A DNA stretch of 64,000 nucleotides from Oikopleura dioica. Lineage: Eukaryota > Animalia > Chordata. Made by a program: the position numbers and the translations under genes. The stretch is taken from assembly GCA_907165135.1 (NCBI GenBank), contig OU015567.1, forward strand, positions 11,904,001-11,968,000. The letters are read 5' to 3'. Below the pieces are notes generated by a model. That model searched no databases. It worked only from the letters and a program-made list of their open reading frames with translations, and was not told the origin of the DNA. Below, piece after piece: positions 15,825 to 50,302 of this stretch. Positions within the stretch are counted from its first letter, which is position 1; the number at the start of each line of letters is the position of its first letter.

Positions 15825-18370
15825 AACTTTTTTATAAACACTGTATTGAAGAAAATAAAATATATTTTTGTAAGAATCATATTCAATAGTAGTTCATAAA
15901 ATTGAACAAAAAATCTCAACATTCAAAAATTTCATGTTTTCTCAAAGTCCATCCTCAAACATCTGGCGCTACCGCAAACATAGTAAAATGGTAAAACTAA
16001 CGTAAACATCTTCTGTGATTGTGGTCGCGTGGTTTTGACTTGACATTGAAGACTTGCACAAATCCTCACAACAGCCAACCACAAACACACCTGTCTTGAA
16101 TTGCTCCAAAATTAACGCGATCTCATTCTTGCAAAAATGCTTGAAACCGGCAAAATATAGATCATATCCCACGTTTTCGTGTTCTACTTCGTATCTTGTG
16201 ACCTTTTGATTAATTCACCCTAAGTTGTTTCTTCTTGCTGTCGAAAGTGCATTTCCATTTGCGCCTTATCTTACAATCTGCCCGTGAGGCCTACATACTA
16301 GGTAGTACCTTTCTCAATCGATCGATAAATAATTTCTCGATATAAAAAATAAAAGACATCCTCTTTAATACTTTTCCTAGACACAAATATCCAGATACAG
16401 AGAAAGAATTAACAGAAGTAAGCATTTCCGGGCATTTTGTTCAGTGTAGGACTCATATATTTTTAAACCGATTGGTTGTACAGAAATATAAGGCATTTTC
16501 CTGTTCACATTTTGTGATTTGTAGACGCCTGAAGCAAAGATGAATATTCAATAGCTCTTGAAAAATTGATCCCTGTTCTTTTCCCCGCATCTCCAAGAGA
16601 AAGGGCTAAATATCTATGCAAAATCGACAAGAGAGGATAAATGATACCGAAAACATGCCCGACAAAAAGGAACCGTTCTCTATTTTACCATTTTCCAATT
16701 CTTCAGTACATTTTCTTAAAAATGATCGCACGAGTAATTAAGTCAAGAGTATACATAATTGAGTTAGAACAAAACTGTGTGCCACGGGACGAAATCTGTT
16801 AGTTAGCTCCTGAACTCTCGAGATGAGTGTTTAACACTTGCTTTAGAGCCCTAGCATATTTCTAGCTTTTTTTTCTGGGCATGGAATCAACAACGAGAAC
16901 GCGAAATGAGCCGCCGATTTATAATCAGCTTTTGCTTTACTTTGGCATTTTTAGGCAGAGATAGAAATCAAAGAGAAAGTTAAAAAAAGAATCAACGAAA
17001 AAAATCGTCCAAGAAGCAACCTTATCTATCTCTTTTTCTAAAGCACATTTGTTTTCATCGTCGTCTTCGTGTACTTACTGACCCCAGGACTGACAGACCC
17101 ATTTGAAGATGAAGTCCCTTCAACCTCGAGTACCTTTAATTCTGTAATCAAGGAAAGAGTTCCATCCAATCAATCACTCTTGACCACAAATGTGGTCAGT
17201 AGAACTAAAATGAACAACAGTTACTCTTCGTTGTTTTTCTTTTTGGAATTCAAAATAGAAATCGAATGCTTGGCTTGGACTGGGAATGCTTTTGCTTGTT
17301 CATGTGATGGTGATGATTTTCATTTTTTGCTCGGGATATCTAGGAATGGAATCGAATGACAATTTTCGCCCATAATGTCGATGGATAAAAATTCCACCGA
17401 AGCTTCACTACGCAATTCTGCAAAATCAAACGGGGCGAAGAATGTTATTTCATATACGGCCGGTCGCCGCTGGTCCCAATTTTCATCGCGATTTCCTTCT
17501 TCCTTTCTGAGTCGCTGCCACTCTTCTACATCGCAATATAATGTTTAGATATAGCTTGTACTTTTTTATTTTGCCAATAAAGACCCGTTTTTCCAGTACT
17601 TCAAATCGAGAAACGAAACAAAGGAAGATATTTATTCAGATTGTTTTAGCGGGCTTTTCGCTCTTCTCGTTTAATTATTTATTAAAAAACCTTGTGCAGA
17701 CTCTATAAAGTCAGCAAAATAAACTGCCAGAACATACAGCAGCACTCATCTTCAATTGGAAATTCAAAATATCTCTTGATGGCTGAGTAGTAGAGTTCAC
17801 TGAGTGAACTTATAGCATCGAGTCTTTGCATAAATAATTTGAAGGTAGACTTCCGCTGACGACTTTCTCAATAGAGCAACCTTGAAGACTGAATTCAGAA
17901 GGTAAACTTGACAATTGTCTCTTTTGAAGAATCTTGCGGAGATGAGTTTACTGGCATTGGATTAACTCGCTCTTTCTCAAACGTTCAAGGGCACTTTTTG
18001 TACTAATCAGCTGCTCATCACTCCTAAGCGCTTTGATTTTTGACCTTTCAAATCTTAATTTACCCATGGGCTCGCAGTAGTTTCGCAATCAAAGACCACC
18101 CAGGTTTGGCTGCTTGGAGTCCTGTTCTTTCCAGTTTTCATTGATTCTAATACCAATTAGACTAATTATATGGATAGAAAAAAGAATAAAAAACATCTAG
18201 CTGACATAGTAGATTAATGTCCTTTCTATGTCATTTTGACCTCCAAAAGCTTCGCACAAAGCTCTACTTTCTTCGGGATTCAACGAAGATTTTGAATGAA
18301 GCGTGGTTTTTATGTAAATAAGCAGCGTTTATTGATGATATCATTTATATGTACAGTATTTTTGGAGCAG

Positions 18371-18710
18371 TCAAAACGAAATCGCTTTCACAAGTTTATC
18401 ATTTTTTCTCTTCTTCATCATTCGATCTAGCGTTTCAGGGAGAAACATGTAGTACTGGTTGTTCTGTAGGCTTTTTGGGTGCACTTGCATCTCGCTTAAT
18501 TTGAAGTAGTTGAGTTCCAGTCGGATTTCAAGTTTTTGTTCTGGTGTCAGTTTCGCCCATTTTTGCTGAAATAATAGATAAATATCGGTTTTCATAAAGT
18601 TGATTGGCAGAAAAATTTTCTAAAGAAGAAGTTCTTACCTTGCCCTTTCGGTCGTAATACGGGGCTTCGGAAATGTCGAGTTCAGATTTGAAAGTCACTG
18701 GCTTCTTCAT
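18371..18710 (-). CDS. 88-aa protein consisting only of a PHACTR-type C-terminal PP1-binding domain
   Basis: Exons 18710-18639 and 18565-18371 (73-nt GT-AG intron, phase 0) give MKKPVTFKSELDISEAPYYDRKGKQKWAKLTPEQKLEIRLELNYFKLSEMQVHPKSLQNNQYYMFLP..., aligning with the PHACTR C-terminus ([49 protein letters not shown], from memory). Confidence 0.85.
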
Positions 18711-19930
18711 GCGATCTCGTGTAAAAATTTTGTTGTCTATTTTTTATTAGAAAATTCTGCTGAAAAAATCCGAGAACTTAATTTTATACTAATGCTAGAC
18801 AACTAGATGTCGCGAGCGCGAGGGCGCCGGAGACCACTCCTAGAGAAGACTTTACTCTGGCTTACGGCGTGAAGGGCAAATAAAACCTGTTTCTACTGGG
18901 TCTTCAAATACAGAAATCTTTCATGGTAATAAACTGTATTCAGCAATATTAAAATAGTTATTATGATAGTCTTTCATTATTAAAATGCAACTGAAAAGGA
19001 CTGTTTTAAATGGTCTATTACCTTTGACCGTGAGAATATTTGTCCTCGCTAAACTTGCAATGACTCCAGGAGTCCTGATAGAAAGGAGAATATAAACTTG
19101 AGATTCGCATGAAACTCATGTGAAAAACACTAACCGTACTTGACGAACACAGTACACATTGTGTACTACACAACTTTAGTAACCCTGAAGAGATGGCGAA
19201 AAGCTTCTCTTGATGTTACATCAATGCAAATAAAAACATAAAATATTCATGGCTGCAATTCAATATCGTTTATTGCTTCTCCTACGATCTGATGCTTTTG
19301 ACGCAAATTTGACTCGTTTTTAACACGTTGCTATTTAATAAAGAGCTATTTAATAATATTATCATGAAAATTTTATTTAGCCAAATCTTTTTCATGAGTG
19401 AAACTTGAAATTTGTGTTCGATAAAGAGGGGAATTTCTGCATGAAAGAAACAGTACAAATAAGATAACCCTTTGAGCAAATATTTTCAAAAACTCTAGTT
19501 CAAACTTTTTGGGTCAAACATTCAAAGAAAGTTAACCCTAATCTTGTTTGTTGCGAATTGAAATTATGCATCATTTTTCGATTGACAGTACATAAGAACA
19601 CAAATACGCATGTACCTTGGATAGCCAGAGCGCTTCGGTAGAACACATGATTCATGCGCTCTTTTTGTAAATACATTTGTTAGTATTTACGCAAAAGCAT
19701 GAATCCGAACAAGATTCTCCTCCTTTTTGAAATAGAGTCTCTATGGATACAATCCTTGGACTTTAGTTTGAGCTTGATTTTCGAAATCAATGATGAAATC
19801 AATCAGAATTACGAAAAATTAGTTTCTAAGTGTTGCACCAAAATGAGACATCAATATGGTTCGACAACGGAACAAATATGAAAGAGAGAGACTTTATTAC
19901 TGAGGCAACACAGTTTTTTTTTTCGAAATC

Positions 19931-22800
19931 TTATTTCCCAAGAACATATTTTGCCACTTCGATGAGGCCAGCCTTGACTTCGTCCCAAACTGGCATGATT
20001 TGGTCAGCTTAATAAGGGCCCATTTGCATTTTCTTTGAACCAGATCATATATCTACAGAGTTGACCCTTTTAACAGATTGTTTATCTAATCTAACACTGT
20101 ATGTTTTCAAAGTACAATTTTTTTCGACTGTAAGAAACAGCCTTTGTCATCTGACTCCCGAATGAAAATGGACCCTTTCATGGAAGCAAGAAACCATACT
20201 CGCCAGTATCGCGCAGCTCCCAAGTCCAGGACAATGGCACCTCGTGAGGATTTTTGACTTTGGAGGGCGTTGGAATGAAATAACTGTATTGTGGCATTAT
20301 TAAAAACGATAAGACGCGTGATCTTGATGCATTAGCGCTTGCATTAGAGTTCACGTGACTAGTTTGAGTGACTTTGTGTTGAATATTTAGCAATTTGAAT
20401 TTCAAATAAATTAGTGAAGGTGTAGTTTCGAAATAGATAAAGAATACTTTCTAATCATTGTTTTGTGGCCTCAAAAGTGATAATGATGGCTCATAAACTA
20501 AGAACAGGAATAGTAAGCTACTAGTGTGAACTTTATGTGACTACTGCATGCGTTGCAATAACACCCTCAACTTGAGGGCCTCAAGTTTAAAAACCCGCCT
20601 CAAGCACATCCATCGCATAATCTTTGCTCGTGCCAGAAGAGGGGTACAGACTATCTCTGATATATGGGTGACAACTGGTACATTAAAATTGAAACTTAAC
20701 GCCTAATGAACGAACTCTAACAGTTTCATGTTTTCTATATCACGAGGATTTCGCAGCTTTCATTCATCTAAAGAAGCATTAGCCTGGTAAAACACCGCGC
20801 AAGTAATCGAGGCCTAAGTGCCTCTCATGAAATTCATAAAAGGAAGCCGTAGAAATTCTCATGCTCGGTCTAGCACCTTCTATCCCATTGTCGATCTCTG
20901 TCGACACTTTATTATTACCCGTCCTAGATTGACCGTAGAGGTAGGTTTCGCCATGCTGTTCTGTCATGGCCTTTTAGAGATCAGTGTATATTCGAGATGG
21001 TATAAAATAATTAGGAGCGGATCGGAATGATCCGCGATTCCAAATGTCAATAGCGAAAAAAATCGTCATTCTAATTCAGTCATTTTTGAACATTCAGTTA
21101 TACATAAAAGGTGAGATGTTCCTTTGTTATATGTACGATAATACTGTGTTTAGTACAGAATAGACTGTATACTCCGCCTGGTGGGCTCGAGACTTTTTTG
21201 GCCTAGCAGTCATGGAAGATCTCTTCCTGAGACGCAGCTGCTCCAGCTGCCTGGAGTTCCTCAAGAGTTGGTGGCTCGTCTGCTATGATAGAAAAGTCCA
21301 CTGCCCAGCTCGACAGAAGTTTCTGAGCGTACGCATGGAAACTGATATAGACTTCGATTTTTCCTTGTTCATGAATTGAGCCAATGGTCGTGTTCCAGGC
21401 AGCCATTTCTGATTCAGTTTGATCACGGAAAAATAGCCGGGCATCTATTTTAAGGAAAGAACGTCATGAAAAATGTCGACTCAACTCCCTTCCTATCCGT
21501 GGAAAATAATCTTTGAAGAATGAAAAGTAGTGAGTCTCAAACTGTTCCTGGTTCAGAAAATGGTCCAGTTCCGTAGTAAGTATTCGAACAAGGCTCACCC
21601 GATGCTCCTACAGTAGACCAGGCAATATCCGAATTCCTGTTCAAATCAACGCCCTTGCAAATACTGTCAGACGGAGCTTGAGAAACTGTCAAACTAGAGA
21701 GACGACGTAATCATTAAAATCTTGAGTCTCAATACGTGCAAACAAACGTACTAGAGCGTATTCAAATGATCGTGAGAAAGAAAATTCCATGAATTTTTCT
21801 CAATATAAACTTGTTGTATCTTTTTATCACGTTTTCGCTCAATAAGCTCCTTTCCTTCCTTGCGTAGGAGTTCTATTCTTTCTCCACATTCTGTCAGTTG
21901 TCCAGTTGTATTCGTAGCCATCCGGGTTAAGATTTGGCATGATATACCAGTTGAACTCGTAGAAATTCGAGAACTCAGTATCGCAGGATGCATCGTTTGC
22001 CGCGCATTCCGCCAGGTTGATCAGCAAGTTCCGGCAAGTTGCATGAGAAATGAATTCTCGGGAGTGAATCCCACAATCAATCACAATCCATGGGAGGTCT
22101 TTGGATGGGTTCCGCAAGCTAAAGCCTTTCATTGCTCGATTTTCGTAAGAGCGGCCGATTTCCTCCTGGCGTAGGACAAATCCGTTGTCCAAATCGGAAA
22201 AACTGATTGCTAGCCAGTCAAACCATTCGTCGAGCTTTTCTTTGATTCTCGAATAGATAAAAAAATCAAATAACAATTGTATTTCCGGTTATGATAATCA
22301 GTTCCTGATCGTTAGTTAGATACTGATCATATTCCTCCAAATAAAGCCCAGTCGGTACATCTGGCTCCGGAATCGAGAATCTTGATGATTTCACTGACTC
22401 GATATCATGGAAGAAATCATCCATTGCTTTTCTTGAGTCATCAAAAACATTGCTTTTAATAAAGAAAAAAACTGAGCGACTTTTCCTGTAAGGAGAACAT
22501 GATGGTCATCTTGGCTAACGATAAATTCAACTCGCTGCTGGTCAAGCTGCCATTCATCTGATTTTCGGGTTAATATGCTAATTTAGCCAAAAAACAATCA
22601 AGGACAGTCCCGAAAAAGAAGGTGTGATCACCGCTGAATCAACACACATGGGATTCATTACCATAGGATGGTAGCGTTTCGAGATAGCTAACAATTTTCC
22701 TGCCGACATCAGCGCTCTTGAAATCGATCGAAATCTTCTGGTATCCTGAATAGTCCTTCCAGCAGGATGCCAGACCGAGCAAAGATGGAAACGGTTTCAT
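19931..22800 (-). CDS. M14A zinc metallocarboxypeptidase (CPA/CPB/CPO subfamily) with signal peptide and prodomain
   Basis: DCGIHSREFIS (HxxE), NLNPDGYEY...DRMWRKNR, GVDLNRN, PFSEP, ISFHAYAQ, LYPSSGTSKDY, WELRDTGEYGFLLP, final exon DQIMPVWDEVKAGLIEVAKYVLGK* (20007-19931). Confidence 0.92.
20008..20179 (-). other. Non-canonical GA-AG intron (172 nt) in the carboxypeptidase gene
   Basis: Unspliced reading stops at GFLLP*. Splicing CCA T|gaaagg...ttaag|CT GAC CAA restores GFLLPSDQIMP, matching the conserved GFLLPASQIIP. Confidence 0.8.
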
Positions 22801-48988: not shown

Positions 48989-50302
48989 ATGGATACAACT
49001 GAAGAGGTGAAAATAGAGCTGACTGACGACAACAGCGACGAGATCGACGATTTTCATCGAGAGATACGGACAGAGGTGATGGCGGAAGCGAAAAGAAATT
49101 TTGATATGCTTCTTGAATGTCGACCAACTGTTGATCGTAACACTGCCTACAAAATGTTCCAGGACTATAAGGTATGATAGGTTTTTTTTAATAAAACCAA
49201 ATCATCAATTTTTCAAGATCGATTTGGCTGAGAAGAAACGATACTACTTCCACGAACAATTCGAGAGCCTGATAAAACTCACCAAGGAGTACATAAAAAA
49301 TAATACTGAAGAAATTCACGTGGCTTCAATCAAACGGCCAGAGACGATTGCAACAAAAGGTTCCTAGCCGAACCTTTTAAATATCAGTTCTACTTGTATG
49401 TCTTTTAGCTTCCACTTCAAGAAGTATCTGCCCATTTCCGCACGACTCAAGCGTTGAAAACATAGAAAATATCTTGCAAATCACATTATATGCACCCGAA
49501 GTGCGCCTCGAATTCCCTTACGATCAGCCTCACATCGAAAGCTCGGTAGAATGGTCGCTTCATTGGGATCCCTGGGTTGCGAAGGTCAAGACCAAGGACG
49601 AAGCAGAAAGTATTTTCAACGAATTTTCTGAGCGAGAGGAAGATCACGAGACGTTCACAACTCGAAATCTCATACATTCTTGTTTTCAAGCAACGAAGAA
49701 ATTGCAACCTGCAAAAATAAAACCTCTCAATAGAAAATTGGCTGACAGTTATCGATCTTCTTCGCTTCAGAAAAAGATCTGTACTCGTTTTGTAAAAAGG
49801 TAAATCCCCTTTCTTTTCGTTTTTTTGACAATTTTTTAGTTCCAACAAGGAACCAATGCCTAAAGTTCCCTTGAAAATCATCAATAGAAACACAGAAAAA
49901 GGAATCTTCGCACGAAACAACGCCAAAGAGAAGGAGATAGATGATAGAATCAGAAAAGCAGTCAGACATCATGAAGTCTTCAATAAGTCTATTATTCCTG
50001 CCGGCAAAATTGCGGAGATGAAAGCATATTCTAAGAAATTCGCCCAAACGAATGAAAACGAAGTCATCAATAAAGCCATCACACTGTCCGACGTTTTCAC
50101 TAAACCTCCTATTCCACCCCCAAAGAGTGAGAAGACAAATGGTTGTGCGCCGAAACAAGCAGAGAAAAATGACAAGGTCAAGAATCAGGAGGCGCTCATC
50201 AAACCTGATGCTCCAACGACAAACGAAAAAATTAAGGAAATTGAGAATACGTTGAAAGAAAAGATGAAAGCTTTTGCTACAAAACTTGCCGAAAAGAAAT
50301 AA
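48989..50302 (+). CDS. Uncharacterised ~390-aa protein with a Lys-rich C-terminus
   Basis: Exons 48989-49171, 49218-49359, 49409-49799, 49840-50302 are all GT-AG and phase-consistent; ttcag acceptor just before the ATG. Confidence 0.7.

Follow-up and report, generated by a model that had tools for sequence, protein, structure and literature searches.

The 64,000-nucleotide (nt) stretch of Oikopleura dioica DNA analysed here (contig OU015567.1; hereafter the window) holds on its minus strand a small two-exon gene, g7352 (18710–18371), whose 88-amino acid (aa) product resembles the end of the PHACTR (phosphatase and actin regulator) proteins that binds protein phosphatase 1 (PP1). g7352 is an independent, expressed gene with a TATA promoter and without an RPEL or actin-binding part. 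Judged by alignment, the 88-aa protein is by descent a protein with the PHACTR PP1-binding module, but it lacks two traits that define PHACTRs: RPEL motifs and the canonical tail at the end. We consider it probable that this protein is a PP1 cofactor beyond actin gating, which would dock on PP1 as Phactr1 does and present a changed substrate surface. Phactr1/PP1 is the best-understood case of a PP1 sequence specificity given by a cofactor, and the approximately 65 residues concerned normally lie inside a large actin-gated protein. Here the module is free-standing in a conserved, duplicated gene; the gate is gone and the specificity-forming tail is exchanged.

Gene structure and transcript of g7352

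A two-exon open reading frame (ORF) of 88 aa had been proposed from the letters of the window alone (hereafter the sequence-only reading). This ORF is present on the minus strand, and its splicing was seen in an RNA contig. The ATG at 18710 opens exon 1 (18710–18639, 24 codons), which is followed by a gtaaga donor; the intron (18638–18566) is 73 nt long with GT..AG ends (gtaaga..tttcag), and exon 2 (18565–18371) encodes 64 aa and the stop codon (TGA at 18373–18371). The spliced product is a basic protein of 10.7 kDa with a pI of 9.7. The gene lies at OU015567.1:11,922,371–11,922,710, and in the public annotation the exact 88-aa sequence is Oidioi.mRNA.OKI2018_I69.chr2.g7352, a separate gene of O. 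dioica. The features of the gene and its flanks are listed below.

18811..18833, minus strand: GC-rich upstream element, TCTCCGGCGCC then CTCGCGCTCGCG; holds an 11-mer shared with upstream regions of the paralog; probably part of the promoter.
18782..18788, minus strand: TATAAAA box, read from the sequence, 31 nt upstream of the 5′ end of the RNA contig at 18757.
18711..18757, minus strand: 5′ untranslated region (UTR), minimum extent, with in-frame TAA TAA and an unused acceptor-like site; the RNA contig piece 18639–18757 is colinear with the genome.
18639..18710, minus strand: coding exon 1, MKKPVTFKSELDISEAPYYDRKGK, with the RVxF-like VTF, the phi-phi residues L11/I13, Y19 and R21 (translation and PDB alignment).
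18566..18638, minus strand: GT..AG intron, 73 nt (RNA joint 18565->18639); the intron of the paralog is at the same codon boundary.
18371..18565, minus strand: coding exon 2, with W27, the amphipathic helix LTPEQKLEIRLELNYFKLSEMQVH, the clade-specific NNQYYMFLPE, the basic C-terminal helix and the stop codon (translation, alignments and AlphaFold2 (AF2) model).
18327..18370, minus strand: 3′ UTR, minimum extent, reached by the RNA contig to 18327, with AATAAA at 18333–18328 (hexamer read from the sequence); candidate poly(A) region.

The transcript was examined with a 358-nt contig (X1) from a poly(A)-selected plankton metatranscriptome, which is 95–99% identical to the window. X1 covers 18327–18565 and 18639–18757, and the intron is removed (joint 18565->18639, skipping 73 nt, CT..AC on the plus strand). 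The sequence-only reading had noted an acceptor-like tttacacgag before the ATG and a CG-rich patch near 18810, both of which are present (the patch at 18810–18833), and X1 passes unspliced and colinear through the acceptor-like ..acgag site up to 18757. The mature mRNA of g7352 is about 358 nt and has one intron removed. Parts of the stretch were contained in six RNA runs from four studies. Two TAA codons lie in frame 12–13 codons before the ATG, and TATAAAA is found at 18788–18782, 31 nt upstream of the 5′ end of X1, which is the canonical distance between a TATA box and a start site. The 11-mer TCTCCGRCGCC (in TCTCCGGCGCC; R at position 7) occurs once in the window, in the CG-rich patch, and also once upstream of the paralog of g7352 and of the orthologs of this paralog in other lineages, in the same orientation and 110–190 nt before the ATG. 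The CG-rich element upstream of g7352 is probably part of its promoter.

We searched for an RPEL part in the window and in the protein. No RPEL motif was found in the 64-kb window with the regular expression RPxxxEL, nor in the 88-aa protein with a Pfam scan that included PF02755. By tblastn, 17 full-length PHACTRs matched the window only with their last ~55 residues, at 18449–18713, apart from one weak match of an RPEL region. This candidate (49061–49168, plus strand, ..ECRPTVDRNTAY..; E ~0.6) lies on the opposite strand and 30 kb off, and was rejected as a chance match. The RNA contig with a 5′ UTR of its own, the stops in frame before the ATG, the TATA box, the public model, the paralog and the 5′-complete mRNA of a relative (see below) indicate that g7352 is its own transcription unit. 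The claim of a stand-alone gene without an upstream RPEL exon thus holds, on the evidence of the contig unspliced to 18757, the stops, the TATA box, the separate model and the empty RPEL searches of the window.

The acceptor-like site (18711–18722, minus strand) varies: at 18722/18721 the plankton contig reads TT instead of AC, so that its pyrimidine run is longer. The site may be a relic of an ancestral intron or an optional trans-splice site.

Similarity to the PP1-binding end of Phactr1

The sequence-only reading had suggested a homology comparison with the PHACTRs. A phmmer search of all PDB chains with the 88-aa protein gave only Phactr1 C-terminal chains (6ZEF_C, E 2.2e-8; 6ZEE_W, E 3e-8), including the PP1-Phactr1 fusion 6ZEJ. 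Residues 5–58 align without a gap to Phactr1 520–573 (register: residue + 515), and on these E-values the similarity to Phactr1 is far beyond chance. In Pfam, the only match of the 88-aa protein was DUF3242 at E 0.12, and the PHACTR PP1-binding end has no model there.

In the structure of Phactr1/PP1, the RVxF motif is LIRF (519–522), and F522A weakens binding about 650-fold; Y534, R536 and W542 also make contacts, and the loss of binding is more than 300-fold for R536P and about 40-fold for W542A (PMC7599070). The helix 545–565 lies on the PP1 hydrophobic groove through L545, I553, L557, F560, E556, E564 and K561, the pocket residues are W542, L545, K550, I553, R554, L557 and H578, and the back-folded end comprises L574, R576, F577, H578, R579 and P580 (PMC7599070). 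The RVxF-phiphi-R-W string is present in the 88-aa protein as V5-T-F7, L11/I13, Y19/R21 and W27, which correspond to I520-R-F522, V526/V528, Y534/R536 and W542. The order of the four motifs, a string that also marks the PP1-interacting proteins spinophilin, PNUTS and PPP1R15, and all Phactr-like spacings are kept in the gap-free alignment. I520 is replaced by V; F522, Y534, R536, W542 and H568 are kept. All ten of the helix residues L545, K550, I553, R554, E556, L557, N558, F560, K561 and E564 are identical, and E41, L42, N43, K46, E49, M50, V52, H53 and S56 of the 88-aa protein are invariant across its short relatives, here called minis, and canonical PHACTRs. The alignment indicates that all mappable PP1-contact residues of the RVxF-phiphi-R-W string and the amphipathic helix are identical or conservative. 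The motifs named in the sequence-only reading (VTF, L11/I13, Y19-D-R21, W27 and LT..K..IR.ELN.FK..EM.VH..S) are all present. Only three residues precede the RVxF place.

C-terminal tail and predicted fold

The match to the PHACTR C-terminal domain had been described as extending over the whole length of the ORF, and this was not the case: residues 57–65 diverge, and the extension 66–88 was found in no canonical PHACTR. The tail of the 88-aa protein is SLQNNQYYMF followed by 23 more residues, instead of the canonical ..TRFHRP end. The substitutions relative to Phactr1 are L574>N, R576>Q, H578>Y, R579>M and P580>F, and only F577>Y is conservative. In Phactr1 this terminal segment (L574, R576, H578, R579 and P580) folds back and builds the substrate pocket and its basic rim (PMC7599070). 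The description of the protein as a PHACTR PP1-binding module is therefore right for the contact residues, which are conserved, and wrong for the terminal back-folding segment, which is swapped for another motif and followed by an extra basic helix. Since the Phactr1 end is replaced by another conserved motif, a PHACTR-like substrate specificity cannot be assumed.

The AF2 model (16-sequence alignment, mean predicted local distance difference test score (pLDDT) 73) predicts an extended N-terminus, a helix at 32–52, a short helix at 54–59 and a new helix at 67–87. Foldseek with this model ranked the Phactr1 chains of 6ZEE/6ZEG first (probability 0.96–0.97). Among the minis, the conservation of P54, N60, Y62 and Y63 equals that of the PP1-contact core, which argues that the new tail is functional and not a product of decay.

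Paralog and purifying selection

The paralog g8258 encodes 89 aa with 70% identity to g7352 and lies 3.3 Mb away on chr2. Its intron falls at the same codon boundary as in g7352; its leader is A-rich and lacks an acceptor site, and its neighbours differ. The pN and pS values (differences per non-synonymous and synonymous site) between g7352 and g8258 were 0.19 and 0.74, respectively, with the synonymous sites saturated, and the ratio was about 0.07. That 74% of the synonymous and 19% of the non-synonymous sites differ indicates that both genes are under strong purifying selection. Reads of the g8258 type occur in bulk O. dioica RNA-seq; their overhangs translate to this type, which indicates that g8258 is expressed.

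A block of ~100 nt, 95–195 nt upstream of the g8258 ATG (L001:5806-5905, aligned with L010 and L013), is almost invariant among O. dioica lineages, whereas its flanks and even the g8258 coding sequence diverge between them. The block holds the TCTCCGACGCC element common with the upstream region of g7352 and ends in CGTCAGATAAA. It may be a promoter or another constrained element.

Relatives in marine samples

An exhaustive phmmer search of 1.84 billion representative proteins gave 303 matches, which split sharply into canonical PHACTRs and a 'mini' group. Complete canonical PHACTRs have 2–4 RPEL motifs, and in them exactly 19 residues follow the ELNxFK core, closing with ..TRFHRP. The mini group comprises about ten clusters of 70–130 aa without RPEL, which share IRLELNxYK..EMxVHPxSxxxNQYYxFxPE and a basic tail and begin 0–24 residues before the RVxF place. 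This signature is common to P0001 (the 88-aa protein), P0002, P0003/P0188, P0004–P0010, P0047 and P0113; P54, N60, Y62 and Y63 are invariant or nearly so in the clade. Except for the two O. dioica proteins, all mini clusters come from marine metagenomes or metatranscriptomes. These alignments define the mini-PHACTR proteins as a small family that is conserved and had not been described before.

The relative P0008 (111 aa) is represented by two Tara metatranscriptome contigs. Both begin at the SMART template-switch adaptor, and between it and the ATG lie 18 nt that contain an in-frame TAA. The adaptor at the contig start indicates that this mRNA is 5′-complete and encodes only a 111-aa mini protein without RPEL. 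Genomic contigs of P0008 have the intron at a different place and lie beside a calponin/CH-domain gene, both of which indicate that the source is a eukaryote. As a guess, P0008 comes from other appendicularians. For another Tara relative, P0004, the 474 nt available upstream in the contig showed no exon 1.

A canonical PHACTR (region 440–600) was compared with a named protein database, and no tunicate was among the best 120 of 5459 matches. Among the papers searched, none connected Oikopleura to PHACTR or to RPEL.

The nearest clusters to the 88-aa protein in the feature space of the ESM Atlas were hypothetical proteins of 69–102 aa labelled Nucleocytoviricota and one viral cluster with PF10488 PP1c_bdg. 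A giant-virus origin, considered from these neighbours, was rejected: a scan of IMG/VR with the mini alignment gave no relative, and both introns and calponin/CH-domain exons occur on genomic contigs of the relatives. P0023 (273 aa, ENA metagenome) contains two tandem PHACTR-like helix segments, ..ELNDFKKEEMQVHEESHQYTHYH.. and ..ELNKFKKEMEVHDESRQNTHLH.., without RPEL.

Proposed action on PP1 and alternatives

If the 88-aa protein docks like Phactr1, residues 5–27 would wrap PP1 through the RVxF-phiphi-R-W string, and helix 30–52 would lie on the PP1 hydrophobic groove in the manner of Phactr1 545–565. G-actin would be unable to compete with PP1, because the protein has only three residues ahead of the RVxF place, which RPEL3 overlaps in Phactr1, and binding would be constitutive. 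The NQYYxFxPE segment and the basic helix 67–87 may alter the surface next to the catalytic site, and substrate choice should differ from that of PHACTR1–4, since the tail is replaced and a basic helix is added. We infer PP1 binding, actin insensitivity and changed specificity; the constitutive activity or the competition with full-length PHACTR that the sequence-only reading had put forward is likewise a prediction.

Several points weigh against an expressed PP1 cofactor of this kind. For g7352 itself, the RNA evidence consists of a single plankton metatranscriptome contig of low depth (2.9x), and the ends of X1 give a minimum extent and not proof of the transcript ends. RNA runs labelled as the same species (X10–X12) derive from a diverged lineage and gave 0 reads at ≥99% identity; what aligned were 37-nt anchors only, the translated overhangs are of the paralog type (KLSEMKVHPH.. 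and ..TLEKMMKKR), and the transcript ends of g7352 are not definable from these reads. Lysine stands in place of both D539 and R544, which form the salt bridge holding W542. The RVxF place is non-canonical (K-P-V-T-F; T-Q-I-S-F in the paralog), as is the LIRF of Phactr1 itself. The Phactr1 tail residues with 7- to 50-fold effects on affinity (L574, F577 and H578) are N, Y and Y. PP1 binding is predicted from sequence.

The same docking could serve mainly for inhibition or competition: the protein would fill the RVxF pocket and the C-terminal and hydrophobic grooves, the Tyr-Tyr segment and the basic helix would cover the catalytic region, and PP1 would be shut off or other RVxF cofactors displaced, rather than a productive substrate pocket being formed. 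We regard this as unlikely, though it is the leading alternative. The pocket and basic-rim residues of the Phactr1 tail (R576, H578, R579 and the P580 carboxylate) are not kept, and the replacing motif (N60, Y62 and Y63) is nearly invariant in the mini clade and so functional in its own right. Many PP1 regulators of similar small size are inhibitors (Inhibitor-2, Inhibitor-3 and DARPP-32), and Inhibitor-2 puts a His-Tyr pair at the PP1 active site; both facts speak for an inhibitor. However, the pocket-forming helix residues W542, L545, K550, I553, R554 and L557 are all conserved, and blocking alone would not need them, which is a mild argument for a productive cofactor; in addition, the Pfam search found no similarity to known inhibitors.

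Two further explanations concern the gene itself. The two exons could close a longer PHACTR transcript that contains RPEL and has further exons above 18757, or the mRNA could be spliced at the acceptor-like site. This would account for the pyrimidine-rich ..acgag site 5 nt before the ATG, use of which would give a frame ..R-M-K-K-P-V-T-F that resembles the canonical ..R-K-I-I-K-F, and contig ends do not prove transcript ends. However, X1 runs unspliced through that site and ends 31 nt from the TATA box, and RPEL-like coding potential is absent from the 1.2 kb that separate g7352 from the M14 peptidase gene as well as from the 64 kb. The public model is separate, the leader of g8258 is A-rich and acceptor-free with a different upstream neighbour, and the mRNA of the relative P0008 is 5′-complete and short. 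The longer transcript is largely refuted by these observations, and we consider it very improbable. Alternatively, g7352 could be what is left of a lost PHACTR gene and in decay, or its ORF could be spurious and transcribed without function; either would agree with the thin expression evidence for the g7352 copy and with the gene loss and gene shortening for which Oikopleura is known. Such decay is hardly credible for a gene that differs from its paralog at ~74% of the synonymous (saturated) and only 19% of the non-synonymous sites, and whose motif set is kept across about ten clusters from many ocean samples. A productive, actin-insensitive PP1 cofactor is the reading that we prefer.

Comparison with known PP1 cofactors

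PHACTR1–4 (6ZEE/6ZEF, eLife 2020, PMC7599070) share with the 88-aa protein homologous RVxF-like, phi-phi, Tyr/Arg and Trp motifs and a five-turn amphipathic helix, with the contact residues kept. They differ from it in size (about 450–950 aa versus 88 aa) and in having an N-terminal RPEL and a C-terminal RPEL cluster, of which RPEL3 overlaps the RVxF; the mini protein has neither and would therefore have no G-actin gate. Furthermore, PHACTR1–4 have the canonical ..TRFHRP end, whereas the mini protein has NQYYxFxPE and a basic helix of ~20 residues.

Yeast Bni4 is a large scaffold that brings PP1 to the bud-neck septins and is not a microprotein. Its C-terminal PP1 (Glc7)-binding domain is related to that of Phactr, lacks RPEL and can be replaced by the domain of Phactr1 (PMC7599070, citing Larson et al. 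2008). By this description, Bni4 is a precedent for such a domain in an RPEL-less protein. The viral proteins DP71L of African swine fever virus (ASFV) and ICP34.5 of herpes simplex virus (HSV) are short versions of PPP1R15 reduced to the part that binds PP1 and recruits the substrate, and are in general character the best functional analogue of a mini cofactor. PPP1R15A/B (GADD34 and CReP) bind PP1 through the same kind of RVxF-phiphi-R-W string (PMC7599070). No sequence homology to PPP1R15 was detected (no PF10488 PP1c_bdg match in Pfam), and the region after the Trp motif differs.

Seven proteins of 140–236 aa from metatranscriptome contigs, found in the family search (P0041, P0082, P0093, P0096, P0119, P0134 and P0185) have the PHACTR PP1-binding module and a ..TRLHRI end without recognisable RPEL, which is a likeness to the minis. 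They differ in keeping the canonical 19-residue end and in having 80–170 unrelated N-terminal residues, and they form a separate clade.

Significance

It is conceivable, though as a whole rather doubtful, that appendicularians and perhaps other plankton animals carry microprotein PP1 cofactors cut from PHACTR exactly at the RVxF, with a new Tyr-rich tail and a basic helix, and that these possibly replace canonical PHACTR in Oikopleura. If this were true, the family would represent an experiment of nature: the actin gate was taken away, and the surface that determines specificity in a PP1 holoenzyme was invented anew. It would imply that PP1 specificity can evolve by swapping a cofactor tail of ~10 residues, and it would offer a second, independent 'composite surface' to set beside that of Phactr1/PP1. 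If the 88-aa protein binds PP1, it would be a natural minimal cofactor, easily synthesised, for asking how the tail sets PP1 substrate choice, and a way to see the effect of unregulated PHACTR-type activity in a chordate. The analysis gives a name to the public model g7352, its paralog g8258 and a set of orphan ocean-metagenome proteins, and is relevant to PP1 specificity and to gene reduction in appendicularians.

Neighbouring genes

A scan of 17000–21000 with Rfam gave no match. The neighbours of g7352 are an M14 carboxypeptidase gene, 1.2 kb upstream, and a convergent DM10-domain gene. In the 3′ exons of the carboxypeptidase gene (19947–20658, minus strand), reads of the diverged lineage join 20242 to 20606 with five extra letters, TGAGT, and also join 20007 to 20180; the exon borders of this gene differ between lineages.
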